Positions 2,826 through 50,872 of a DNA stretch of 64,000 nucleotides are shown one piece after another. The translations under genes and the position numbers were made by a program. Within the stretch, counting starts at the first letter, position 1. Each line of letters begins with the position of its first letter. The notes under the pieces are model-generated. The model had not been told where the DNA came from. It saw only the letters and a list, made by a program, of their open reading frames with translations, and did not search any database. Source of the DNA: Zootoca vivipara (taxonomy: Eukaryota); assembly GCF_963506605.1 (NCBI RefSeq), contig NC_083288.1:28334001-28398000 (forward strand), written 5' to 3'.

Positions 2826-2955
2826 CGCCTAGGATCCGCCTTCAAGCTCCTGCTGTGCAATCTGGGCCGCGGCCTCTGTCGCGTTTAATAGCACCTGTGC
2901 CTCTTTATCCATCTCCAAAGTAGCCGCAATGATTGCCAGATTGCTGTCAGAGGGT

Positions 2956-3425
2956 TGTCGTGGCTACTCTAGAGTAACTCTGCCTGAGTCAAGTTTGTCT
3001 TCAAAGACGTTTATTGTGCTATTTATTGACAGTGTAGAGACAGCTTAAAACATGACCTCTCATCCCGAATAAGAATCCGGCAATGGCGTACGTCTATTCC
3101 TACGCCAGCAAAGTAGTCTGGGCACCCTAAAACGCCGCCCCCTTGACCTGCGATGCGGCACTCTCCTTACTTCTTGTGCCAGAAGGAGTGATGCCCTTTC
3201 AACTTCCTCCGTAAGCGGTCGGTGCCCTGGCTCTGCAACATCCCTGAGCGTCTGCCTGCATTCCTCCGCCCCGAGCTTTCCCATTGTTCCTCTTTCTGAT
3301 TTCTCTCCTCCTCCGAGTCTCCCCCTCCCCCTCTGGCTGCTTCAGAACCACTGGTGCTCTCTGTACTTGACGAGGTGGACGTCAGAATGATGGGGGCTGG
3401 CTTCCTGTAGGGAGTCACCCTTACA
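2956..3425 (-). mobile_element. Probable solo LTR (Gypsy-like)
   Basis: - strand reads TGTAAGGG...CGACA with AATAAA-type signals near its 3' end (tttatt at ~3010 and ~3023); no TSD found. Confidence 0.45.
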
Positions 3426-4259: not shown

Positions 4260-5189
4260 ATGTTGGGAAACCAGACAAAGCTGGCAGAATTTATCCTCCT
4301 GGGATTTCGGAAATTCTACGAATTGCAGACACTTCTTTTCCTGATATTTCTGGTAATTTATGTTGTGACCATAACTGGAAATATTCTTACGTTTGCCCTT
4401 ATTGTCTTTGATCGGCACCTTCATACCCCCATGTACTTTTTCCTGGGGAATCTCTCCTTTCTGGAGGCCTGCTCTAGCTCCAATATATTCCCACAGATGC
4501 TTTTGGCTCTCATTACTGGAGACCGAAGGATTTCCTTCACAGGCTGCTTCACACAGTGGTATCTCTTTGGTTCCTTGGAAGCTGCAGAATGCTTTTTACT
4601 CTGTGCGATGTCTTATGACAGGTACCTAGCAATCTGTAAACCATTGCATTATGCAACAACTATGAAAACCCACACTTCTATCCATTTAGCAGCTGCATCT
4701 TGGTTCAGTGGATTTATAGCTTGCTTGGTATTACTCATTCTGATGCTACAGTTATCATTTTGTGGCCCTAGTGAAATTGATCATTACTTCTGTGAATACT
4801 TCCCTCTTCTCAAACTCTCTTGCAGCGACACCAGTGTGTTGGAAATTACACGTTACATTTTGGCTGTCATATTTACATTCCCTCCATTTTTTCTAACTAT
4901 AACTTCCTACGTATACATTATTGCTGCCATTTTAAAGATCCCCTCTGCCGCTGGGAGGCAAAAGGCCTTTTCCACCTGCTCCTCTCACTTGATTGTGGTT
5001 TCAATTTTTTATGGCACACTCATGATTGCGTATATGATACCGAAGTCAAAAAAGAACAGAGAGATGCAAAAGATTTCTTCTCTCTTGTACACAGCTCTGT
5101 CGCCTCTAGTCAACCCATTTATATACAGCCTAAGGAACAAGGAGGTAAAAAATTCACTGAGGAATAATATTAGGAAACTTGTGAGGTGA
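4260..5189 (+). CDS. Olfactory receptor, class II (OR11/OR6-like), 309 aa, intact
   Basis: GN, LHTPMYFFLGNLS, MSYDRYLAICKPLHY, HYFCE, KAFSTCSSHL, PLVNPFIYSLRN motifs; N-terminal NQT glycosylation site; upstream pyrimidine tract and AG acceptor (4243-4244). Confidence 0.97.
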   Translation: MLGNQTKLAEFILLGFRKFYELQTLLFLIFLVIYVVTITGNILTFALIVFDRHLHTPMYFFLGNLSFLEACSSSNIFPQMLLALITGDRRISFTGCFTQWYLFGSLEAAECFLLCAMSYDRYLAICKPLHYATTMKTHTSIHLAAASWFSGFIACLVLLILMLQLSFCGPSEIDHYFCEYFPLLKLSCSDTSVLEITRYILAVIFTFPPFFLTITSYVYIIAAILKIPSAAGRQKAFSTCSSHLIVVSIFYGTLMIAYMIPKSKKNREMQKISSLLYTALSPLVNPFIYSLRNKEVKNSLRNNIRKLVR

Positions 5190-34930: not shown

Positions 34931-36012
34931 TATTGTAGTTCTCTGATATATGTATTGTAGTTATCTGTACTATTAATATTAATATTATACAACAGTATGT
35001 GATATCTTTTTTGCTTTCTACCACCAGTCCACCCACTGAGGTCGTTGGGGTTTCAAAGCCGAAATGCTCTGACAAGTAGATTTCTCATCTATCCGAGATA
35101 GACAGAATGGGGTGGCATGAGGACATCTAACCAGCCCTAGCAATTGTCTTCTGTGTTGCATTGGAGACTGGGGGCTGGGGTCTTGCTTGAATATGTTACA
35201 GAGCATCTCTGGTACCAGAACAATTGTGTGGTCATCAAAGGAGCTGGGATCCTCACCCACCAACATCATTTTATTATACTATACTATATTCTATATGTAT
35301 ATACTATATTCAGCAGAGAATTGTGTCCTTTTGTTGCTCACTCCCATCCTTTGCAAACAGAATTTTATTCCCATGAAGGAGAAAAGCATGTTTTCTTTGA
35401 AGAATAGCTATGATGATAAACACGATAAGGAAGTCTATGCAGAGGACTGGATAAACTACTTGGAGGTGTTAAAAATACACTGTAAAGTAGAGCTACCAAA
35501 GTTCAGTCGAGTGACGGTCTTTCCTTATTGGATAAATTGGGGGTGCAAAAACAGCATTCTGATAGTGTAGGATTAAGGCTGTTGGGCAGGCACCCAATCT
35601 TAAAATAAGGATTGCCACATTTTAAGAAAGACAAGATTTTAGTTCCTTCAATAGTAGCATGGATAATAAGCATTATGGTAACCCTTCTATCACAGTGATG
35701 GAAGGATGGAAATACTATATATTCTCCTGCCTCAGAACCATTAAATGAACAGAAGTCTTGACCTGCATGGAATATGGTTTCTCTAAGTCTGACACCATCT
35801 TTGTGAGGATCAAGAGCAGGCCTTTAGATTCTACAGGAATCAAATTTTAATAGTGTACACTTCTTTTGAAGAGCATGGTCCAGGGGGCTTCTGCCAGTGG
35901 CTCTCCTACTCAGATGTGGGCCCTCAGCAGATACATGATCATGTGACACCAGCCCTTGAAGTTGTTAATTTATTATTCTTTTTTTACTATAATAGGATGT
36001 TATAAGATAAAG

Positions 36013-36147
36013 CAGGCATCCCCAAACTTTGGTCCTCCAGATGTTTTGGACTACAATCCCCATCATCCCTGATCATTGGTCCTGTTAGCTAGGGATCATG
36101 GGAGTTGTAGGCAAAACATCTGGAGGGCCGCAGTTTGGGGATGCCTA
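36013..36147. mobile_element. Palindromic hAT-type MITE (30655 family)
   Basis: Same TIRs; TSD agataaag. Confidence 0.9.
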
Positions 36148-37878
36148 AGATAAAGTAATGATATGTTGTTACAGCTGGAAACAAAATTTCTTTATATTTT
36201 CGCTTGTATAAAATGATTAAAAACATTAACTTCGCTTCAAAATGCAAGTTTTCGGCTTTTTTAAAGTGTATTTCAAACAGATCTCAATTTACCAAGCTAA
36301 ACATCAACCAATCATAAAAATAATTGCAGATTTGGATTCCTCATGTGCAATAACATATTTTTAGAACCCCTCATTGAGCAAATTAAAAAAAAATCGTCCT
36401 TAAATGACACGCCCTACTGGTACATGTCAAAAAGAGACTTGGGAATTTGGGGAGTGCCTTTTGTTCTCAAGGCCTCTGAGACTAAACAAAGTTTCAGCTG
36501 TGCTGGTCTCTGGCAATCATGAGATATATGTTCATCACCCTGCTATTGGTAAATTCATAATTAAACCCACAAGGGGATTGGTTCCTAACCTGTCCCACAC
36601 GTGGAGGTTTCAAGGATAAAGGTTTGGGAATTCAGATGTTAATTGCTCTTAACACTCAGCTCTTAGCCATTGTCTGCTTTTTGCCATTCATCGCTCTCCA
36701 TCATGGCTTCGCCATGGGTGTTTGCCAAAGGAAACCCTTCTGGTCTGTAAACTGTGCTTTGTAATTCTGTCGCTGTGAGTATGTTTTAGCTAGTTATATT
36801 TTGCAATGTTTTTTTTCCTGTTTGGAACCTTCTGAGAACTGTGTAACCCTTTTAGTTGTCCTTTCTTTTAATAAATATTGAAAAGGACTCTTTTGTCTTC
36901 TGTTTTATGCCTTTTGCCTCGGGAAGCTAAACCAGTACCTCACCATTTGGACACCTACTTGTTCTACCTGTTGAATTTCTGCCTGCGTCACAGTAAAGTG
37001 ACGCAGGACCATGCAAACCCGGTAAACACGGAGGATCTTCTTCCTTGCCCCCAGGCATAGCGTTGCCCGGAGAAAGGAAGTGGTGGCAGCTCTACCTTTT
37101 AGATTTGTGCTTCTGCAAAGAATGGCACTACTCTTTCCCTTCTTTCCCAGTTCCGGTTGGTGTCTAGATGGACTGGATAAGAAGGGCGGAGAGTGGTATT
37201 ACTACAGCATCCCTTGAAAAGTAATACAATATTTTGAGGGCATTTTCACCTCTCCCCACAAAATCCAATGAAAACTTTTATAAAGTTCCCCAATAGGAAA
37301 AAAAGCAAAAGCAAAACATAGTCCTCCCTGAACTTTATCACCTGCTAATAGGGCTATACAACCAAAGTGGGATGTATTCAAATTATTAATCAAATTTTAA
37401 AACAATTGAATCATTTTCTTATTCACAATTTTTTTTGTTGAGCATAATTTGATAGCAAATGAAAACATCCCTATATAATGCTCAAGGGAAGAGTGATGGA
37501 GAACCTTATCTGTGTTTTGCTCCTGAGAATTGCTCACATTTTTTAGAAAATTGCAGGAGGGAAATAATACATAGTAACAGTGCACCTTCTCAGTGAAGTC
37601 TTTAGGTAAAGCATACAGAATATATGGTGCTCACTGTAGAACCCTGGGGGTTGCTACCCCTGTGTCCTGTAGTTAGGCTATGAAGCTAATCCTGTAGGAC
37701 CACAGCTGAGTTTAAGGAGACAAAAATCCCGAAGAAAGAATATTTTTTCTTCAAAGAAAGCACAGGGAAGCCAATTTTTCATCTCTAACTGTAATGATGT
37801 CAAGATGGTCATGAAGAAAAAGCAGAAATAATAAAGCTTTATCTAGTGGTAAATATCTGAATTAATATCTGGTTACAT

Positions 37879-38054
37879 CAGGGGTTGTCAGCCAGGTCCC
37901 GGCCACCCACTAGTGGGCATTTCAGGATTCTAGGTGGGCGGTAGGGGGTTCTATGGCACAAGCTGAATCCTCTGTCCAGTGGGCAGTAAGGAAATTTTAC
38001 CATCAAGACAGATACATTAGTGGGCGGTAGGTATACAAAGGTTGACTACCCATG
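37879..38054. mobile_element. hAT-type MITE
   Basis: caggggttgtca...gttgactacccatg; TSD ggttacat at 37871-37878 and 38055-38062. Confidence 0.85.
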
Positions 38055-38062
38055 GGTTACAT

Positions 38063-38198
38063 CAGGCACCCCCAAACTGCGGCCCTCCAGATGTTTTGGC
38101 CTACAACTCCCATGATCCCTAGCTAACAGGACCAGTGGTCGGGGAAGATGGGAATTGTAGTCCAAAACATCTGGAGGGCCAAAGTTTGGGGATGCCTG
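38063..38198. mobile_element. Palindromic hAT-type MITE (30655 family)
   Basis: TSD ggttacat / ggttacgt (38199-38206). Confidence 0.9.
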
Positions 38199-38499
38199 GG
38201 TTACGTAGTGTGATCGATAGGTTTAGTGGTTGTATGAATCAAGGATATTGTTGAAGTCTATGTGGGATAGAGGGAGCTCCTAATGTGAAATTAGAATAGT
38301 GTGCACAGTTCTGGTTGCAATATTTCATCAGTAATCTCAGAGAGCTGGAAAATGTATTTAAGAAAAGGGCATACAAAACAATCTTAAGGGCACAAATTCC
38401 TTAGAAACACTTTCATGTCTCTTGAATCTGCTAGCAATCAACTTCATTGGCTAAACCCAAGATCAAGAGAATGGGAAAATTAACCTCTATCTACTTTCT

Positions 38500-38815
38500 A
38501 AACCACAGAGCTTGCCGATCAGAAGGTCGGCGGTTTGAATCCCCGCAATAGGATGAGCTCCCATTTTTCGGTCCCTGCTCCTGCCAACCTAGCAGTTCAA
38601 AAGCATGTCAAAGTGCAAGTAGATAAATAGGTACCACTCCAGCAGGAAGGTAAATGGTGTTTCCATGTGTTACTCTGGTTCGCCAGAAGTGGCTTAGTCA
38701 TGCTGGCCACATGACCTAGTACGCTGGCTCCCTTAGCTAGGAAAGTGAGATGAGCGCTGCAACCCCAGAGTCGCCCACGACTGGACTTAACTGTCAGGGG
38801 TCCCTTTACCTTTAC
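38500..38815 (+). mobile_element. Sauria SINE (5' truncated)
   Basis: gccgatcagaaggtcggcgg...gggtccctttacctttac tail. Confidence 0.88.
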
Positions 38816-38921
38816 TTTCTGCACAACATTGCTAATTATAACTGTTGTTTCGTGGGTTTCTTAAAATCTCTTCCCTCTGCGGGGGGAGGAGATGTTGTGG
38901 GCCCACGAGTCCTTCACGTGC

Positions 38922-39029
38922 GGGGGGAATGGCTAGCATTCCCCCCAGCCCATTGGTTCCTTCCCTGCCGCGACGCTCCCTTGGCTCACCCAATCAGGAC
39001 GCTCCCTGGGGGCTTAGCGGTGTATTTAA
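38922..39029 (+). promoter_or_regulatory. Putative internal Pol II promoter of the YR element
   Basis: Perfect palindrome ggggggaatg-gctag-cattcccccc (38922-38946), ATTGG at 38952, CCAAT at 38989, TATTTAA at 39023-39029. Confidence 0.55.
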
Positions 39030-40505
39030 GGGAGCGCGCGGCAGGAAAACATCCTCTTGTATCCGGACCCGACCTGCTTTTGGACCTGGATCCTGCTTCG
39101 GTCAGCGTCTCTCAGCGCCGCTTCTTCGCCAGGAAGAAATCCGAGCTGCAAATCACTTAAACGGCGTTTTTAAACGCCAACTTTCTTTACAGGCTGCTTC
39201 CCAGGATCGCTCTTGCCGCCTCCGTAGCCGCCGGGCTTCTCGCGTCCTCGCTGCGCTCGGCGCCGGCCGGCAAGCCCACCCTCGCCCTGTCCGCGTGGCG
39301 ACTGGCTTCCGGGGACGCTGCAGCCACCTCCTCCGCCGCGGCGCCTCTCCATGAGGCGCCTAACAGCTGTTTCCCCCAGCCGCCGGTCTCGCGGCGCTCG
39401 GCGCGCCTGATTCACGCCAGTCCGGCTCTTCTCGTGGCTGGGAGCTCGCGGCCACCTTCTTCCCCCTCATTGCGCCTAACAGCTGTTTTTCTTCGGCGGC
39501 AGTAACGCAGCGCTCGGGGCACCCGATTCGTGGCTGACCGGCTCCCTAGCCGCAGCGGTCTACCGGCCAACTTCCGCGCTGGGGCGCCCCCTCACGAAGC
39601 GCCAAACAGCTCCTTGCCTTTATCGCCGGTCCTTCTGTGCTTGGGGCGTTTGAGCCACGGCCAGCCTGACATAACAACGCCCGCGATCCTGCTTCACAGC
39701 TTCGGTGGCAACGGTTACGCTCCCGCTCGCAGCTCCTGCTTCGGCAACGCTTCCTGCAGGTCAGTCGCCCGGGATCCCTTGGGGCCGCCCGGGCTAACAC
39801 CGCCATTTAAGGTTTCGTGTTTATTAGGGAATTCTGTCCTTGCTTTATTCCGGGGTCTCCTGTTGTGTGGTGGCTAATCTCTGCTTCTGACTTCCCTGTT
39901 GTTGGGCCGCCATTTTGTTTCTTGGGTTACCAGGGTAACGTGGGGGCCGCCATTTTGAGAGACCTCGTGTGCGGCGCCATTTTGAGCAAGGGGTTTCATT
40001 TCCTTGCTTTCTTTTGATCACGTTAGCTCGTTGTTTGTCTGCATCGCCTCCGGCTCATTGTTTCTTTGTTGCAATTTCCCTTTTTCCCCCCTTCTCGGAT
40101 TTCTAGTTTCTTTGTTGCAATTACCTTTTGCCCCCTTCTCGGATCTCTAGCTCTGAGCCGGTGTGATTTAACTTTTACCTTCTATTGGAGTCAGTAGCAG
40201 CTTCAAGCTGCAACAGTTGCATACAGACTTAGCCTCTGGTCAAGCAGCAGCCGGGTAGCTTGCCTTTGTTACAAGTTTCCTTTCCCATTTATTCTCAAAG
40301 CAAGGGCGGTGCCTTTTACACAGTAGCAGCCTGCCTGCAAGGTTCTGCTTCCCTTGTATTGCCTTGTCAGTTTATCTCTGTTGTTCTACTGTACAATTAG
40401 GCTTGCTTCGTTTCTTAAAGCAGTAATTTTGGTCACTTGGCTGAGTTAACAATATCAATATATATATAGCTATTTGTCTATAGAAGAAGGTGTTCATCTT
40501 GTTTC

Positions 40506-40650
40506 NNNNNNNNNNNNNNNNNNNNNNNNNNNNNNNNNNNNNNNNNNNNNNNNNNNNNNNNNNNNNNNNNNNNNNNNNNNNNNNNNNNNNNNNNNNNNNN
40601 NNNNNNNNNNNNNNNNNNNNNNNNNNNNNNNNNNNNNNNNNNNNNNNNNN
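40506..40650. other. Assembly gap inside the YR element leader
   Basis: Run of N. Confidence 1.
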
Positions 40651-40965
40651 ACGCAGTAAATTTACTGCCTGAGTTGGCATCAAATTGGTACTGTTACTGC
40701 CATTGCCCTTGTCTCATCTGCCTTCACCTCATCCGGGGCCATAAGCCGGGGTCCGTAGGGCGTTTATTTCACACTTTAATTAGTTATACATCTAGCTGGG
40801 GCCTTATCAGGCCAAGTTAATTTTCTGGCAATTTGCAGTTAGGGTTTGCTCAGGGCTTACTAAGACTTTTCGTTTGGCGCATTATACTGCTCTCCTGCCT
40901 CACTTTGCCTACAGTCAACTTTCATTCAGGATCCTCAGACGCCTCTTTCTCAATTATCAAGTGCA

Positions 40966-42462
40966 ATGGCCCCTAAACGCAAACAGAAGGAGTCCGCAGC
41001 AGCGCCCGCAAAAAGACGCCCTACGAATGGCAACAGCTCTTCCAGCACTCCTGCGTTTACCTCTATTTCTGTTTCACCCGAAGCTTTAGCTAGCTTATTC
41101 TCGGGCGTCCAGAGTTTCTTTCAACAGGTTTCTAGGCCGGGTGTCACCATTCAAGAAGTCCCCACGGAAGGGTCTCCTGACTTCATTGCCGAGACACCCA
41201 CGGCTGAAGCTGCGCACCCCGGGCCTTCATCGGCTATTCCCCAGGAACAGACTAGGCGTATGGAAACCAGGTCCCAATCTGCCGCTGCGGATGTGGCCCC
41301 TGCCGGTGCCAGGGACAAGACTCCTTCTCCCGCTGCGGGTAACACTTATATTTCCCAGCTGTCACCAGGTACCCCTGCTTGTCTGCGGACCCAGCCGCCT
41401 GATTCCCATAATAGGTCCAGGCGTCTCTCGTCGATTACATCCTATGATAGTGATGCCCAGGACCAGGCGAGAGCTACGCAGTCTCAACAGGACACCGCTC
41501 AGCAGGGCGACCAGGAGAAGGGGAAGACGAAGAAGACGGGTCTGAAGAAAACTAAGAAGACCAAGCACACGGAGCCGGAGGGTGACTCAGGTACTTCCTC
41601 TTCTAGTTCCGATGAGGATGAAGGAATTCTAGATGGGTACTGGGGCCAGGGGGAAGATCTGATTGGTTTGCCTCTTTGGGCACACGAGCGGAGGGCTAAC
41701 TCACACCGCAAAACCTTTAATGGCACATTGGAGTGGAAAAATGGGGCTTTGGTGGAAGATGTAAAAACTTCCACTTTTGTATCTTCTGACTTCATTATTG
41801 GGAATCATTTGTCTAGCAAGAAAAGGAATAAGATCCTGAATGGGGATTTTGTTGACATTTTTACCCTCTTGCCACCCGCAAAGTTAAAGGGAAAAGGGGA
41901 AAAGAAACACACATATGGAAAACGTAAATATAGGGAGCCTAGGGCAGAGTGCACCTTCGAAAATTGGTTGGACGGTTTCCAGGTATATATGGGTACCATA
42001 GTGGCTTGTTATCCAAAGAGGGCAATGCACCTCGTGGCCTATATGGCTCATGTGAGACGTGCTTACGAGTTGGCTGGGGAGGGACCGGCTCTCCTGTATG
42101 ATGAGGATTTTCGAAGGAACGCCTCCCTTTTGGCCACCACCCGTTGGGACCTGCGTGACCAGAACTTCTGGGGTGAGCACGTTAACCCTTACATTGAAAA
42201 GAAACACCCAGAGGCATCCCGATATGCAAAATTTGAACCAAAAAAACCAAGCCGCCGACTAGTGTGCTGGGAATTTAATAAGGGCACGTGCACCAGAGCA
42301 TTCTGCAAATATAGTCACGAGTGCGAGAGGTGCCAAGGGGCCCACCCAGCGTCCGCTTGCTTCAAGGGCCAGCAGTCCTTTCGTGGGGGTCGCGGGAACT
42401 TTCGGCAAGGCCCGAAAAGTGCAGCAGCCCAAGGACCTGGCCACACAGCCAACAGATACTAA
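40966..42462 (+). CDS. Gag-like ORF1 of the Ngaro-like element, 498 aa
   Basis: Basic NLS-like N-terminus, Ser/acidic tract, C-terminal CCCH plus CCHC-like fingers (CWEFNKGTCTRAFCKYSHECERCQGAHPASAC), RGG tail. Confidence 0.88.
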   Translation: MAPKRKQKESAAAPAKRRPTNGNSSSSTPAFTSISVSPEALASLFSGVQSFFQQVSRPGVTIQEVPTEGSPDFIAETPTAEAAHPGPSSAIPQEQTRRMETRSQSAAADVAPAGARDKTPSPAAGNTYISQLSPGTPACLRTQPPDSHNRSRRLSSITSYDSDAQDQARATQSQQDTAQQGDQEKGKTKKTGLKKTKKTKHTEPEGDSGTSSSSSDEDEGILDGYWGQGEDLIGLPLWAHERRANSHRKTFNGTLEWKNGALVEDVKTSTFVSSDFIIGNHLSSKKRNKILNGDFVDIFTLLPPAKLKGKGEKKHTYGKRKYREPRAECTFENWLDGFQVYMGTIVACYPKRAMHLVAYMAHVRRAYELAGEGPALLYDEDFRRNASLLATTRWDLRDQNFWGEHVNPYIEKKHPEASRYAKFEPKKPSRRLVCWEFNKGTCTRAFCKYSHECERCQGAHPASACFKGQQSFRGGRGNFRQGPKSAAAQGPGHTANRY

Positions 42463-44074
42463 TTTGTCCCTGTCCTTGGCGTTTTCTCCTATCAAACTCC
42501 TCCCTTTAAAATCATTATTACAACTATATCCCGATAGGCAAGCAGCAAAGTATTTGTGGGACGGATTTTCTTTGGGCTTCAGAATTCCAGTAGCAGTACC
42601 ACCAGTTTCGGGTGACCCACCAAATCAAAAGTCAGTACGGGACATGCCCGAGGTAGCCAGAAAGAAAATCAATAAGGAAATTAAAGCGAATAGAATAGCT
42701 GGCCCCTTTTCCTTCCCCCCGCTGCAGGACCTTCATGTTTCCCCACTGGGTGTTGTCCCTAAAAAGATCCCAGGTGAGTTTAGATTAATTCACAATTTAT
42801 CTCATCCCAAAGGCTCCTCAGTCAATGATGGTATCCCCCAGGAGCTTTGTACCGTTAAATACGCCTCCTTTGACCAGGCAATAAAGCTTATTAGGAAATT
42901 TGGCAGAGGCGCTTTATTGGCAAAATGTGATATTGAATCTGCATTCCGCTTGCTGCCAGTTCACCCTCACGACTTCAGGTGGCTGGGATTCAAGTTTGAG
43001 GGGGCGTATTACGTTGACAAAGCAATGCCCATGGGGTGTTCAGTAGCATGCTCAGCCTTTGAATCGTTCAGCACATTTTTGGATTGGGCACTCAGATTTA
43101 GAACAGGCCTCGAGGGCGTGACACATTACTTGGATGACTTCCTTTTCTGCGGGCGGGCTCTGAGTGCGGATTGTGCTTATCTCCTTGAAGCCTTCGCATC
43201 CCTGACCGCAGAGCTGGGCGTACCTTTGGCTGCAGAAAAAACTGAAGGACCGGCATCCACCATAACGTATTTGGGCATTGAGTTGGACACCGTTGCCCAA
43301 ACATCCCGATTACCCCCAGAAAAATTAGCGGCCCTTAAGCAAATTATTTCGGAGACACTTCCTCTCAGGAAAGTGACTCTGAAACAAATCCAATCCCTCC
43401 TGGGTCACCTTAATTTTGCCTGCAGAGTGGTGTCCCCAGGACGTCCCTTTTGCGCAAGGCTTGCTAGACTGTCAGCAGGACTGCGCGCGTCTCACCATAG
43501 GGTGCGCCTCAATAAAAGTGTAAAATCCGACCTGAAGGTTTGGTTACAGTTTTTAGAAAAATTCAACGGCATCTCTTTGTGGCAGGACACTTTGAGTTTA
43601 AGAGTAGATTTCCAGGTACACTCTGATGCTGCGGGTTCTCTGGGTTTTGGAGTATACTTTAAGGGCAGATGGTGCGCCCAGCACTGGCCTCCGCAATGGA
43701 AGAAGAAACCCCTCATTCGCGATCTAACATTTCTGGAATTTTTTCCCATAGTTGTAGCGGTTCATTTGTGGGCAGACGAGTTCAAGAACCATCGGGTATG
43801 CTTTTGGACCGATAACCAGGCTGTGGTCAACGTTCTCTCAAGACAATCTTCACGATCTCCCAGAGTGTCCGTTTTGCTGCGGGCCTTTGTGTTGCTCTGC
43901 TTGCAATTGAACATCTATTTCTCTGCCAAATTTGTACCCGGTGTTAATAATGATATCGCGGACGCTTTATCTCGTTTCCAGATGGACCGCTTCCGCTCTC
44001 TTGCTCCAGAGGCTCAGCAGTTGCCGGAGGCGTTCCCGGAACATCTATGGAATCTTGGGAACGAGACGTGCTAG
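42383..44074 (+). CDS. Reverse transcriptase-RNase H ORF2 (no ATG at 5' end)
   Basis: SPLGVVPKK, FRLIHNLS, AKCDIESAFRLLP, MPMG, YLDD, YLGI; RNase H SDA, EFFPI, TDN, NDIADALSR. Confidence 0.95.
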   Translation: MGVAGTFGKARKVQQPKDLATQPTDTNLSLSLAFSPIKLLPLKSLLQLYPDRQAAKYLWDGFSLGFRIPVAVPPVSGDPPNQKSVRDMPEVARKKINKEIKANRIAGPFSFPPLQDLHVSPLGVVPKKIPGEFRLIHNLSHPKGSSVNDGIPQELCTVKYASFDQAIKLIRKFGRGALLAKCDIESAFRLLPVHPHDFRWLGFKFEGAYYVDKAMPMGCSVACSAFESFSTFLDWALRFRTGLEGVTHYLDDFLFCGRALSADCAYLLEAFASLTAELGVPLAAEKTEGPASTITYLGIELDTVAQTSRLPPEKLAALKQIISETLPLRKVTLKQIQSLLGHLNFACRVVSPGRPFCARLARLSAGLRASHHRVRLNKSVKSDLKVWLQFLEKFNGISLWQDTLSLRVDFQVHSDAAGSLGFGVYFKGRWCAQHWPPQWKKKPLIRDLTFLEFFPIVVAVHLWADEFKNHRVCFWTDNQAVVNVLSRQSSRSPRVSVLLRAFVLLCLQLNIYFSAKFVPGVNNDIADALSRFQMDRFRSLAPEAQQLPEAFPEHLWNLGNETC

Positions 44075-44961
44075 AGGGAGTACTGGCGTCGGTTGCCCCC
44101 TCCACTCTTAACACCTATAAAAAGGCCTGGTCTGATTTCCGGTCCTTTCGCGTTAGGACCACGGGTTCAAATGGAGACACACCCCCCAGTAGGAGGGAGG
44201 TCCTAGCGTACTTAGCCGGTTTAAGGAGACTGGGCAGGGCACCCAGAACCTTGCACATTCAAACAGCCGCTATCTCCTTCTTTAGTAAGGCCAGCTATGC
44301 AACGGACCCTTGCGCGGATTTTCTGGTGCGCAAAGCTTTGGAGGGCTGGCGCAGGCTCCAGCCTCCGCGCAGGGATAATCGGAAACCCATTACTTTTGAA
44401 TTATTATTCCAAATTCACAAACAGCTCAGGAAGCTGTGCTGGTCAAAATATGAGGCAAGACTTTTCTCAGCAGCTTACTCTTTAGCCTTTTTCGGTGCGC
44501 TCAGGGTTGGTGAGGTGGTGTGCGAGGGATCCCCCGCCCAAACCGCCAAGGGTATCTTGTTATCTGACCTAACGTTGACAGAAAAGGAAGTGTTAATTCA
44601 CATCCGCCAATCAAAAACGGATCAACTGGGTAAGGGCACCTCGATGCGCTTGCCAGCTACAGGCCATTGCGGCCCCTGTCCCGTAAAGGACACTAGGCGT
44701 TTTCTCCATTTGAGGCCCGCCTCACCCGGTCCGTTTTTAATTCACCAGGACGGGTCCTGTTTAGCCCGCCACCAATTTACCCGCGTTATGCGCAGGGCTA
44801 TTGCTGCATGCGGTCTTCCTCCCTCTGATTTTGCAGCACATTCATTCCGTATTGGTGCTGCCACAACTGCGGTACATATGGGTTTGTCTGCAGAGAGAAT
44901 AAAAGATCTAGGCCGTTGGAAGTCCAAAGCGTACAAGGGGTACCTCCGATCTTCAAAATAA
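44047..44961 (+). CDS. Tyrosine recombinase ORF3, 304 aa
   Basis: Catalytic R (LRVGE), K (SKTDQ), H-x-x-R (HSFRIGAAT), GRW, Y (AYKGY); overlaps the end of ORF2. Confidence 0.95.
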   Translation: MESWERDVLEGVLASVAPSTLNTYKKAWSDFRSFRVRTTGSNGDTPPSRREVLAYLAGLRRLGRAPRTLHIQTAAISFFSKASYATDPCADFLVRKALEGWRRLQPPRRDNRKPITFELLFQIHKQLRKLCWSKYEARLFSAAYSLAFFGALRVGEVVCEGSPAQTAKGILLSDLTLTEKEVLIHIRQSKTDQLGKGTSMRLPATGHCGPCPVKDTRRFLHLRPASPGPFLIHQDGSCLARHQFTRVMRRAIAACGLPPSDFAAHSFRIGAATTAVHMGLSAERIKDLGRWKSKAYKGYLRSSK

Positions 44962-45022
44962 GCACTTCCGTTTTCGGCTGTTGGCTGACGTTCCCTTTAC
45001 GTTCCCTTTGTTTCCTTTGCAG

Positions 45023-45594
45023 AAAAACGCGTAAACATCTGGTTCATTGGTCATAGCATCGTGCATTGGGCCCGGGCTCGCGCTTATGATCGGAGAATGG
45101 GGCCCAGCCTAGGGTTGCCATCATGGGTTAGAGTGTCCTGGATCACGAGACGGGGTATGCGTTGGAATGAGTTCCTGCCAACCGTGAAGTCTAGAGCCGC
45201 TATGCTGGGCCCTCCCGATATTCTGGTGGTGCAGCTGGGCGAAAATGATTTGGCTTATCGCTCTGGCCAGGATTTAAAATGGACTATCTTTGCGGACTTT
45301 GATGGCCTGCTGGCGGATTTCCCCAACTTGACAATTTTTTGGTCCTCGCTGATGGAGAGGCGAGTTTGGCGCGACTGCTTTTCGCCCGCTGCTGTAAACA
45401 AAGCAAGGAAGTTTCTGGATATCGCTGTGGCCAGAAAGGTCTTGACCTTGAATGGACATTATATACCGCACCCGGACATTAGGTTCAATGAGCTTTCGTT
45501 ATACCGTGATGATGGCGTCCATCTTTCCGATGATGGGAATGACATTTGGATTTCTGATATACTAGGTGCTATTAGGAATTGGTTGCGACTGTAA
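45023..45594 (+). CDS. SGNH/GDSL hydrolase ORF4 (probable spliced terminal exon)
   Basis: Frame extends upstream of the listed GTG: KRVNIWFIGHSIV (block I Ser), RRG (block II), QLGENDL (block III), DGVH (block V); preceded by branch point, pyrimidine tract and CAG (45020-45022). Confidence 0.85.
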
Positions 45595-45925
45595 GGGTAT
45601 TGGCGGCGAACCCCTTTCGGGGCTCGATTGGCGGTAGGCATTGGATTATCTCAAGAAGGTACAGGTGCGGGGGGGGGGGGAGGTTGCTGCCATCACCTCC
45701 CCCAAATGCGAAGGGTACTCCCCTAAGGAGTCCGGGGCGTTGCCATGTCCGAAGCCGTGGTAGGTGAGGGCCTGAGGGCTCGCCCCTAATGGTGGCCCCA
45801 GGATGAGTTCCTAGTTGATGTGCATCGCAGGACTCATCCAACGGTGGTTAACCCTTCACAGACTGCCAGCAGAGCGGGCTGGAGTCAGATATAGTCGGTT
45901 AGATCCAATGCCTATGCCAATACCC
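45595..45925 (+). ncRNA. Large structured RNA element in the 3' UTR of the YR retrotransposon
   Basis: About ten mutually compatible nested helices, closed by gggtattggc/gccaataccc and taggcattggat/atccaatgccta. Confidence 0.7.
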
Positions 45926-45941
45926 CTCTACAGTCGTAATC

Positions 45942-46000
45942 AATAAAGTTGTGGCCTTTTCATGCCCATTAACCTTATATCCTGTGTCTGGTGTCTTTAT
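45942..46000 (+). terminator. Polyadenylation signal of the YR element
   Basis: AATAAA at 45942-45947 followed by GU-rich tgtgtctggtgtcttt. Confidence 0.65.
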
Positions 46001-46034
46001 TTCTCGCGGGGAGGACTCGGGGCATCGCCACACA

Positions 46035-46772
46035 ATAGTAGTCATTCAGTGACAACATCTTCATGATCACAGCAACAAGACAAGACTGACTCTGAGGACA
46101 GGGAAGCTACATTTATAGGGACAGGGGACTAGCTAGAAAGGGATACATTTTGGAGGGAACAATATCAGGCAATCACAGTGCTGCCTTTTGGAGGAAACCA
46201 ATAAGACAGAGGATCCAAATACAGCAGCTTAAATGAACCAATAGTAGCTGCACCTTCTGGAACCAAAAGGCACTTACTTTACCCTAAAGCAAATACAGAC
46301 AATAGTAATACAGATACAGTGGAACCTCGGTTTATGAACACCTCGGTTTACGAATTTTCGGTTTGCGAACGCCGCGGACCTATCTGGAACGGATTAATTC
46401 ACTTTCCATTACTTTCAATGGGAAAGTTTGCTTCAGTTTATGAACGCTTCAGTTTATGAACAGACTTCCGGAACCAATTACACCCATGCTTCGGGTTAAG
46501 TACGCTTCAGGTTGAGTACTCCGCGGACCCGTCTGGAACGGATTAATCCACTTTCCATTACTTTCAATGGGAAAGTTCGCTTCAGTTTATGAACGCTTCA
46601 GTTTAAGTACTCTGTGGACCGTCTGGAACAGATTAATCCACTTTCCATTACTTTCAATGGGAAAGTTCGCTTCAGTTTATGAACGCTTCAGTTTATGAAC
46701 AGACTTCTGGAACCAATTGTGTCCATAAACCGAGGTACCACTGTATAAAATCCTTTGACTCAATACACAACA
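46035..46772 (-). mobile_element. Probable LTR (U3-R part) interrupted by a MITE and by the YR element
   Basis: - strand begins TGTTGTGTATTG at 46772 and has several CCAAT boxes and TATAAAT (46111-46117); the possible 3' end ...AAACAACA lies at 38843-38890. Confidence 0.5.
46317..46743. mobile_element. Tc1/mariner-type MITE with internal ~90-bp triplication
   Basis: TA|cagtggaacctcggtttatg...cataaaccgaggtaccactg|TA; three copies of ggaac.gattaat.cactttccattactttcaatgggaaagtt.gcttcagtttatgaacg. Confidence 0.9.
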
Positions 46773-47609
46773 CCAACAGCCTCCAACAAGTGCCCCAAGT
46801 CATATTTTGCTAACTAAAGACAAGGAAGCAAACTCAAATGCTTCATGGAGTTTCAGTTGCCTGATTATTTTTGTTGCCCTTTTCTGCATACTTTTCAATC
46901 GTATGGAATCTGAAGGACCTCCTCCTATTGCCTTATCCTGCCTCAACCCTTTATCCTTCATCAGCATTATTCCCCTTCAGATTCTCTCCAAACACGCCCA
47001 TGTGTGCATATTATCTCAATTAGCTGGGTTCCTGTCTGACCATGGAATCTACATGTGGAAAGCTCTCCTCGGAAATGTTTGCTTGGTTCCAGGCCTGTTT
47101 TTTTTTCCCCTAGGCTCTGGCAAACATGTTTCAAAAATTGCACAGGACTTCTAGTTTGTTTCACAGATGGATTTAATTGTATCTTTATGACTTTTCCAGA
47201 GCTTTATCTGCTGCAAGTGTTCCCACCCCAGAACCTGTACAAACCATAGGTTATTTTTATATGCAACAATGTGTGAGAATTACCGTTAAGAGTACACCTA
47301 TGTCCTTTGGTGATGTTAAGCATTTTAATCAGGAGTCTTAAGTAGTTTTCAAAACTACTTTTATTGTTGTATTGTGTATTATTTCTTGGTTTTATATTTC
47401 TAAATTACACATCACCTTTGGAATCTTCCACTGTAGTTTATGCATTCACAAAAAATGTCCCCCCCCCCAGTGGCATGCTGAGTCCATGTTTTCTTCAAGA
47501 CATCTATCTCAACCATGATGGTAGATTATTTCCTGGTTAGTCACTGCCAGCTTAGGCCCCGTTGGTGTATATTGATGTTAGGGCTTTTTGCACTGATGTG
47601 CATGTGACC

Positions 47610-48024
47610 AGCAGTGGAGCTTCATGCTTCGCCACCGGGGGCGGAGAGCAGGCATGCTGCCCCCAGTGATGTGCGCGTTCTGGGGGCGTGGTGTGGCGCA
47701 TGTTTGGGGGGCGTGATGAGCTGTGTGCAGTGACGCGGTGCACATTTTGGGGGGAGTGGGGCGCTATGCACAGCGACGTGGCGTGCATTTTGGGGAGTGG
47801 AGCGCTGTGCACAGTGACGTAGCGCATTCTGGGGGCGTGGTGTGGCGCATGTTTGGGGGTGTGACACACTGTGCGCAGTGACGTGCACATTTTGGGGGGA
47901 GTGGGGCGCCATGCGCAGTGACGTGGCACACATTTTGGGGCTGGGCGGGCAGCGGTGATGACGCCGCTGGGATCGCGTTGCTCAGGGCGCACCGCCCCCA
48001 CCGCCCCTTCTTCCTACGCCCCTG
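47610..48024. mobile_element. GC-rich hAT-like element with internal ~38-bp minisatellite
   Basis: Right end ctacgcccctg as in the 18604 element; repeated gcagtgacgt...cattttgggg units; TSD unclear. Confidence 0.6.
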
Positions 48025-50688: not shown

Positions 50689-50872
50689 CTGCGTTTCTCC
50701 GAAAATAAGCCATACCCTGAAAATAAGCCATAGTGATAGGCAGTTTAACCTTGTAGGTTAAACTGTACCATACTTAATAAAAAAAATAAGACATCCCCTG
50801 AAAGTAAGCCACCGTGTGTGTTTTTGAGGAAAAATAAATATAAGACAGTGTCTTATTTTTGGAGAAACACGG
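50689..50872. mobile_element. Tc1/pogo-type MITE
   Basis: TA|ctgcgtttctccgaaaataag...cttattttttggagaaacacgg|TA. Confidence 0.85.

Follow-up and report, generated by a model that had tools for sequence, protein, structure and literature searches.

How reverse transcription is started in tyrosine-recombinase (YR) retrotransposons is poorly understood. For the DIRS-type elements the primer has not been identified, and a 3′ hairpin has been suggested to serve as the primer of DIRS-1 (PMC7192593), so that the original prediction for the locus described here agrees with the literature on this point. The locus lies in a stretch of 64,000 nt from Zootoca vivipara (contig NC_083288.1; hereafter the window, with positions counted from its first letter) and raises the question of whether the 3′ UTR of a YR retrotransposon is filled by a single nested, multi-helix RNA of about 330 nt (45595-45925), for which a role in priming, packaging or catalysis had been proposed. 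We conclude that the fold is real and extends slightly past these limits, and that the view of it as a single functional RNA is partly supported: the 330-nt fold is composed of a conserved base and a lineage-specific insert, which makes up most of it.

The host element and the fold behind its last reading frame

The element in the window is a YR retrotransposon of the Ngaro type with the ORF order gag-like, RT, YR and SGNH hydrolase (Table 1): an RT/RNase H ORF is followed by a tyrosine-recombinase ORF, and an extra hydrolase ORF comes after YR. Such an SGNH hydrolase ORF behind YR is known for amphibian and fish Ngaro elements (PMC9210276). The YR of the window aligns to the YR ORFs of five relatives, the invariant R..HxxR block included. 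Its hydrolase has the GHS and DGVHL blocks, and PF13472 is present in the relatives, whose annotation is SGNH hydrolase; the closest hydrolase proteins are uncharacterised ones from the lizards Podarcis, Hemicordylus and Rhineura and from a frog (34-58% identity). There is no ATG ahead of the GHS motif in the hydrolase frame. YR and hydrolase share one frame with two stops between them (44959-61 and 44986-88, in the region 44962-45060), and a polypyrimidine tract ending in AG precedes the opening of the hydrolase frame at 44989. No viral contig was detected by the hydrolase or the YR alignment, and the 89-aa antisense ORF across the UTR gave no matches when used for a protein word search.

As regards the ends of the element, no direct repeat of the split type (A1...B1-A2-B2) joins the 5′ to the 3′ region, part of the former being hidden by an assembly (N) gap at 40506-40650. 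The best local alignment between the two regions is 13 nt long and inside the shuffle range, and no ITR or ICR was found between them. The 5′ end (38885-39214) is the only other place with a clearly low folding z (-3.5 on one strand, -3.3 on the other). It has a 10-bp perfect hairpin, GGGGGGAATG gctag CATTCCCCCC (about 38922-38946), then ATTGG, and downstream of the hairpin a CCAAT (38990) and a TATTTAA box (about 39024). The putative 5′ UTR (39801-39985) contains four of the five CGCCATTT(T/A) boxes of the window (at 39801, 39908, 39948 and 39975), which we take to resemble YY1-type sites. Three of these boxes contain CCGCCA, the exact complement of TGGCGG in the 3′ UTR; a 7-nt complementarity between the two ends of the RNA (GCCGCCA with TGGCGGC at 45600-45606) is possible, but short. 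Just downstream of the element there are tandem and dispersed repeats: units of about 90-150 nt occupy 46343-46718 between inverted repeats of 28 nt (46314 and 46719), and a G-rich array of 40-58-nt repeats lies at 47673-47940.

RNAfold gives 45595-45925 an MFE of -155.6 kcal/mol with the nesting originally listed and a z of -4.73, no shuffle out of 100 being as good, so this check came out in favour of the prediction. Ten of the 11 two-arm helices that it had listed are confirmed, with few exceptions to Watson-Crick pairing. Three are perfect (10 bp at 45595-604/45916-925, 12 bp at 45635-646/45903-914 and 9 bp at 45676-684/45695-703), and 45647-651/45887-891 and 45801-812/45829-839 also pair; 45707-716/45851-860 contains one C.A mismatch. 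The exception, 45861-870/45878-886, has 5 of 9 positions paired in the proposed register, which the MFE structure shifts. The hairpin 45607-626, listed apart from these helices, has one A.C mismatch. The landmarks are also where they had been placed: the stop TAA at 45592-94, AATAAA at 45942-47 and ATTGGCGG at 45599 and 45627. The core of the domain thus stands, while its limits do not, for 9 bp more are found outside (45585-45593/45929-45937). The extended fold 45585-45937 has a still lower z of -5.45, because the outer helix reaches into the last hydrolase codons.

Among 330-nt windows along the element, the coding ones stay within z ±2.6, and only the UTR in its exact register stands out. 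Since windows shifted by 165 nt from it have a z of about 0, the UTR fold is a closed domain in exact register. The stability is unevenly distributed within it. The interior (45647-45902, 256 nt) folded without its closing stems has a z of -1.70, with 10 of 200 shuffles as good, and reaches -3.67 together with its 12-bp stem. As the interior alone is near chance, the excess stability resides in P1a/P1 (9 + 10 bp), in the 12-bp stem and in the first hairpin. The MFE structure accounts for a share of 0.001 of the ensemble of 45595-45925. The reverse complement is equally foldable (z -5.59), so energy cannot by itself name the strand.

Table 1. Reading frames of the Ngaro-type element and parts of its 3′ UTR structure, in window coordinates
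Feature	Position	Strand	Remarks
Gag-like ORF	40966-42462	+	–
RT ORF	42383-44074	+	RVT_1, E 1.3e-10
YR ORF	44047-44961	+	weak Phage_integrase match
SGNH hydrolase frame, last ORF of the element	44989-45594	+	open from 44989; TAA at 45592-45594
P1a 5′ strand, outermost helix	45585-45593	+	9 bp with 45929-45937, one of them G.U; spans the three final codons and part of the stop
P1 5′ strand, GGGTATTGGC	45595-45604	+	10 bp, perfect, with 45916-45925
J1, first TGGCGG	45601-45606	+	unpaired GGGG here in most relatives; TGGCGG in L003
P2 hairpin, CGAACCCC, loop tttc, GGGGCTCG	45607-45626	+	8 bp, one A.C; counterpart of the covarying hairpin of the relatives
ATTGGCGG, unpaired in the MFE structure	45627-45634	+	conserved (N0-2)TGGCGG motif after P2
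P3 5′ strand, closes the insert	45635-45646	+	12 bp, perfect, with 45903-45914
Insert interior	45647-45902	+	G13 tract, hairpins 45676-45703 and 45801-45839, other helices; z -1.70
P3 3′ strand	45903-45914	+	pairs with 45635-45646
P1 3′ strand, GCCAATACCC	45916-45925	+	pairs with 45595-45604
P1a 3′ strand, TACAGTCGT	45929-45937	+	pairs with 45585-45593
AATAAA, candidate polyadenylation signal	45942-45947	+	4 nt past the domain end

The view that the fold belongs to no known RNA family was borne out. The Rfam search of 38000-48000 at E<=1 returned nothing beyond mir-5408, from a hairpin of MITE type, and a weakly scoring histone stem-loop, and that of 45550-46050 at E<=10 gave only noise, with no ribozyme family, no hepadnavirus epsilon and no CTE. 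The proposed catalytic role is not supported by this result, ribozyme families being absent even from the matches at E<=10. ARAGORN detected no tRNA or tRNA-like fold in the UTR. The mir-5408 matches (43 bits against a gathering threshold of 90, both strands) fall in palindromic MITE-like repeats at 38063-38198 and 36008-36153, which are inverted copies 2 kb apart.

The module in metagenomic relatives

The scan of metagenome contigs with the hydrolase alignment yielded 32 loci with 24-40% protein identity, representing 19 non-redundant lineages. A small module of constant order follows the ORF stop in most of them: P1, an unpaired strand, the hairpin P2, the motif (N0-2)TGGCGG, a variable insert and the return strand of P1. 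The unpaired strand before P2 is GGGG in most relatives and TGGCGG in L003 and in the window. In the relatives P1 has 7-18 bp and P2 5-11 bp; P2 is followed after 0-2 nt by TGGCGG (variants TGGCGT, TGGCAG, TGGCAT and TTGGCC) and, after a further 0-36 nt, by the P1 return strand, so that whole modules measure 47-96 nt. The loops are of 3-12 nt in most lineages and of about 30 nt in L008/L014.

The module occurs at a distance of 6-65 nt past the hydrolase stop in L001, L002, L003, L007/13/15/16, L008/14, L009/12/30, L011 and L017-L022, and within about 110 nt of the stop in L025 and L026/31. Where the hydrolase frame is truncated, it lies about 200 nt (L024) or about 500 nt (L028) from the first in-frame stop. 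In three cases, the window and the relatives L009 and L003, P1 covers part of the stop codon or directly adjoins it. A telling case is L027, whose module is found 31 nt past the YR stop with the hydrolase ORF about 850 nt further on; therefore, the module marks the end of the pol-side coding block and not that of the hydrolase as such.

Several side observations concern the surroundings of these modules. In L015 (960-1671), L016 and L024 the element ends about 671 nt past the hydrolase stop, the contigs diverging after ...CGTCATAAAATAA. The 3′ region of the L015 family has ATTGG boxes and a TATAAAT about 250 nt past the module, which suggests an internal copy of the promoter (A2-like); the L007 and L013 contigs break just after it. 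L027 (3408-3527) has three copies of the perfect 16-nt palindrome GGTTACCATGGTAACC past the module, between the YR and hydrolase ORFs. In L019 a 127-nt piece of the hydrolase (2936-3062) is repeated with 100% identity at the contig end, 1543 nt downstream (4479-4605), which is due either to a duplication, tandem or partial, or to a loop in the assembly.

A fixed descriptor (G-run, P2, TGGC[GA], P1) matches 14 of the 19 non-redundant lineages, whereas dinucleotide shuffling of the stretches concerned (140-190 nt) gives an expectation of 0.45. It has 19 on-site matches in the sense strand and 10 elsewhere in about 180 kb, with both strands counted. L008/L014 and L017 have relaxed versions of the module, and L005, L006 and L010 no clear one. 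This result bears on the possibility that the window merely contains a GC-rich stretch which folds by virtue of its composition and has no function. The near-random interior and the minute share of the MFE structure in the ensemble speak for such a reading; however, the z-scores of -4.7 to -5.5 that no shuffle out of 100 equalled, the 31 bp of near-perfect long-range pairing located exactly at the ORF/UTR boundary, and the recurrence of the module among the lineages make it highly improbable, and we regard chance as already disfavoured.

The helices are retained while their sequences turn over. P1 and P2 differ wholly in sequence between lineages with the pairing preserved, and the P2 arms, which are 30% identical, illustrate this: GAAAATAAA/TTTATTTTT in L007, GAGAGGGG/CCCCTCTC in L002, GAACTCG/CGAGTTC in L003, CAGAAATT/AATTTCTG in L011, GACGCGC/GCGCGTT in L019, CAAGAAAAC/GTTTTCTTG in L021 and GGGCACA/TGTGTCC in L027. 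The P1 and P2 positions are paired in 15-17 of 17 lineages with 4-6 pair types each; the helices in this count are the best stems picked, and significance is therefore carried by the shuffle test only. MAFFT alignments of the module across lineages were structurally inconsistent. In a subset of four AT-rich lineages aligned with Infernal, 93% of the cells are paired, a share that drops to 49-70% once the partners are displaced by 1-3 columns; both sides have changed in five pairs. Among these distant relatives the covariation sought is thus present in full for the base, which is also kept in position and architecture; the interior has no counterpart there. With position, architecture and covariation conserved, the base behaves as a cis-acting element should. 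The sequence past TGGCGG is not conserved, the bases there being different in every lineage.

Two covariance models were built, R1 and R2, one from one lineage and the other from the four AT-rich lineages. They recover L028, L008, L014 and L023, and neither the GC-rich lineages nor the UTR of the window, an outcome that we attribute to the seeds and that calls for caution about the window's membership; the link of the window to the module therefore rests on the descriptor, the position and the resemblance to L003. The same models give 19-23 bits (E 0.02-0.07) to an AT-rich bulged hairpin at 50817-50871, GTGTTTTT GAGG AAAAATAAATATAAGAC..GTCTTATTTTT GGAG AAACAC, which is located outside any recognisable Ngaro element and may be due to chance or be a relic.

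The strand on which the module acts can be approached through its wobble pairs. In the sense-strand folds of 16 lineages, helix-internal G.U pairs number 33 against two A.C 1x1 mismatches, a figure which may be raised somewhat by the abundance of G and T in the sense strand, and the sense strand is the more stable one in 15 of the 16. In the window itself the counts, 5 against 3, do not decide the matter, and the single mismatch of P2 is an A.C on the sense strand. The G.U excess favours selection in the sense strand, as RNA, over selection in antisense cDNA or in a duplex palindrome.

This is why we consider it quite improbable that the module works as DNA, either as a folded recombination site of the YR, comparable to attC, or as an internal copy of the end junction, comparable to the ICR of DIRS-1. 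Maintenance of structure under sequence turnover is a hallmark of attC sites as well and supports the reading as DNA, as does the fact that the helices are nearly all Watson-Crick and that both window strands fold equally. DIRS-1, moreover, is amplified via a linear single-stranded cDNA and needs its ICR (PMC7192593). However, it is the sense strand that carries the wobble excess, whereas the cDNA is antisense. The module is no more like the element ends than expected by chance, its variable loops leave no fixed crossover spacer, and no split direct or inverted terminal repeats tie it to the ends.

We regard the module as a probable control signal on the element RNA, which apparently has not been described: the literature searched contains no description of such a module, and an earlier mention in the primary Ngaro papers is possible. 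It would represent a new family among the structured cis-elements of retroelements, which are a known kind.

The module of the window and its insert

The module of the window is composed of 45595-45634 and 45916-45925; between its P1 (45595-45604) and P2 stand the two letters GG. Its central part (45607-45634) is the only match to the hairpin and TGGCGG descriptor in the 64 kb, both strands included: just after the last pol-side ORF there is a hairpin of at least 6 bp with GGG or GGCGG in front of it and TGGC(G/A) no more than 2 nt behind it. L003 has the layout TGGCGG-hairpin-NN-TGGCGG in common with the window, and the P1 helices of the two are alike (TATTTGGTAGT/ACTACCAAATA in L003 and GGGTATTGGC/GCCAATACCC in the window). 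A difference from the relatives lies in the P1 return strand, which is expected within about 40 nt and which in the window (P1 of 10 + 9 bp) is 281 nt away, because an insert lies between.

This self-closing insert of 278 nt (45637-45914; about 278-280 nt) occupies the variable site, where the relatives have 0-36 nt. When it is deleted in silico, a 78-nt module of -40.3 kcal/mol (z -5.2) is obtained, in which the 3′ strand of P1 comes 3 nt past TGGCGG, as in the geometry of the relatives. A stable non-coding structure in the 3′ part of the YR retrotransposon is upheld, and the idea that all of the 330 nt form one functional RNA is not supported, since the interior has neither significant structure nor a counterpart in the relatives, whose modules are much shorter.

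The duplication of ATTGGCGG, which had suggested a switch between two alternative partners, does not sustain this idea either. The alternative helix would have 6 bp as compared with the 10 + 9 bp of P1 and is not conserved; among the relatives the motif is duplicated in L003 only, where it offers no alternative partner.

The insert may have arisen by expansion or internal duplication, as its stem and its inner hairpin with a G-run echo the module, or it may be an inserted repeat of the form TA-GGCATTGGAT...ATCCAATGCC-TA. Features that might be those of a MITE are a 10-12 bp perfect inverted repeat and TA on both sides; there is no other copy in the window. Taken further, the latter option means that the module is real and the 278-nt interior an insertion unrelated to it, such as a small non-autonomous DNA transposon, and that the nested fold is a by-product: the terminal inverted repeats GGCATTGGAT and ATCCAATGCC would automatically give the 12-bp closing stem, and the insert-free sequence would read ...ATTGGCGG-TA-TGCCAATACCC... 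The interior that folds no better than shuffles, the near absence of sequence at exactly this site in the relatives, the compact geometry regained upon removal of 45637-45914 and the perfect stem with its TA...TA flanks all fit this explanation. On the other hand, a second copy is lacking within the 64-kb window, the TA ends are the outer pairs of the stem and are expected by chance about once in 16 cases, and the stem resembles P1 and the ATTGG repeats, for which an internal duplication is equally possible. To our knowledge, its terminal inverted repeats are also unlike those of the common vertebrate Tc1/mariner or hAT elements, which counts against an insertion. On balance we find this origin of the interior unlikely. 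In either case, it is the base of about 75 nt, and not the mostly lineage-specific 330-nt fold, which deserves attention.

Possible function and comparison with known systems

We tentatively suggest, with a little less than even confidence, that the region is a three-way junction built on the conserved module of the SGNH-Ngaro elements, and that this module serves as a protein-recognition site in the sense RNA, the likeliest partner being the element's RT or RNP. P1 begins at or just past the stop codon of the last pol-side ORF, and the two helices would display the conserved unpaired G-rich strands for recognition by protein in the sense-strand genomic RNA. The RT or RNP, as the likeliest partner, may begin the minus-strand cDNA there or select the RNA for it. 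Since the stop codon of the window lies partly within P1/P1a, a ribosome that terminates there would need to open P1, so that the module may be unable to fold while translation is being terminated, and vice versa. Recruitment of the RT or RNP for minus-strand synthesis appears the likeliest role because the primer has not been identified and DIRS-1 may be primed by a 3′ hairpin, as has been proposed. Being conserved from metagenomic relatives to a lizard directly behind the coding region, and at the same time defined and mutable, the module offers a concrete target for the question of how reverse transcription starts in DIRS and Ngaro elements.

A more specific version of this suggestion, which we judge unlikely, is that P1/GGGG/P2/TGGCGG forms an epsilon-like start site for the RT, at which the minus-strand cDNA is begun behind the coding region, with the unpaired TGGCGG docking or templating and the passage of ribosomes through the stop codon acting as a gate between translation and replication.

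Alternatively, the module may act in the handling of RNA, either in the export or stability of the unspliced genomic RNA, by analogy with the CTE of MPMV, or as a regulator coupled to termination. Its location in the 3′ UTR, common to all transcripts, agrees with this, and so does the contact between P1 and the stop codon noted above for the window and two relatives, L003 and L009. In addition, the hydrolase frame without ATG opens after a polypyrimidine tract ending in AG, from which we infer that spliced and unspliced RNAs may coexist, so that an export signal would be useful. However, the splicing of the hydrolase frame is itself deduced from the sequence, neither CTE nor another Rfam family matches, the two-fold symmetric internal loops that define CTE are missing, and in L027 the module follows the YR ORF, which is not the last one. 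A function in RNA handling therefore seems decidedly unlikely to us.

Four further candidates were rejected. An ordinary tRNA primer-binding site, for which at least 8-10 nt complementary to a tRNA 3′ end should be kept among the lineages, is not compatible with the data because nothing past TGGCGG is conserved: this motif is the only constant part, the following bases vary, and ARAGORN was negative. An internal copy of the element ends, similar to the ICR, was dismissed as the module aligns to neither end, whichever the orientation, better than shuffled sequences do. A reading of TGGCGG and ATTGG as YY1 sites or CCAAT boxes does not hold for most lineages, which have GTGGCGG without the ATGG or CCAAT core. 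Finally, for a stimulator of stop-codon readthrough, the 44-codon in-frame extension bears no sign of coding and the spacing from the stop varies from 0 to 65 nt.

The closest analogues of the module are hepadnaviral epsilon, the stem-loops of LINE and R2 elements, the hairpin and ICR of DIRS-1, the CTE of MPMV and attC, none of which is matched by sequence or covariance model. Epsilon, a bulged stem-loop that binds the P protein and templates the primer, has the same succession of a lower helix, conserved unpaired strand(s) and an upper hairpin, and is thus a model for a candidate site at which the RT meets its own RNA. However, epsilon is located near the 5′ end and has a single-sided bulge of 6 nt, whereas in the module both strands of the internal loop are G-rich, the 3′ side containing TGGCGG. 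Epsilon also requires a terminal-protein domain.

The 3′ UTR stem-loops of stringent-type LINEs (UnaL2/L2) and of R2 are located past the last ORF, conserve shape over sequence and are used in cis by the RT. The module resembles them as a structured element downstream of the last ORF. Unlike it, they occupy the extreme 3′ terminus of the RNA, the starting point of target-primed reverse transcription, while the module abuts the stop codon and can be more than 600 nt from the element end (L015 family); YR elements, moreover, are without an endonuclease-primed mechanism.

The 3′ hairpin of DIRS-1, the proposed self-primer, is similar with respect to the element order, the priming question and the occurrence of a hairpin in the 3′ non-coding part (PMC7192593). 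It differs in being at the 3′ end of the RNA, with an ICR complementary to the element ends, whereas the module is neither terminal nor related to the ends.

The CTE of MPMV, too, belongs to a retroelement, in whose 3′ UTR it forms a long stem, the sequences of its internal loops being conserved and the helices beside them variable. Its two identical loops are arranged in 180-degree symmetry and bind NXF1, while the module has neither such symmetry nor an Rfam match. The attC sites of integrons, which are bound by a tyrosine recombinase, share with the module a conserved structure, a variable sequence and short conserved core motifs, but act as folded bottom-strand DNA, whereas the wobble bias of the module favours the sense strand, that is, RNA.
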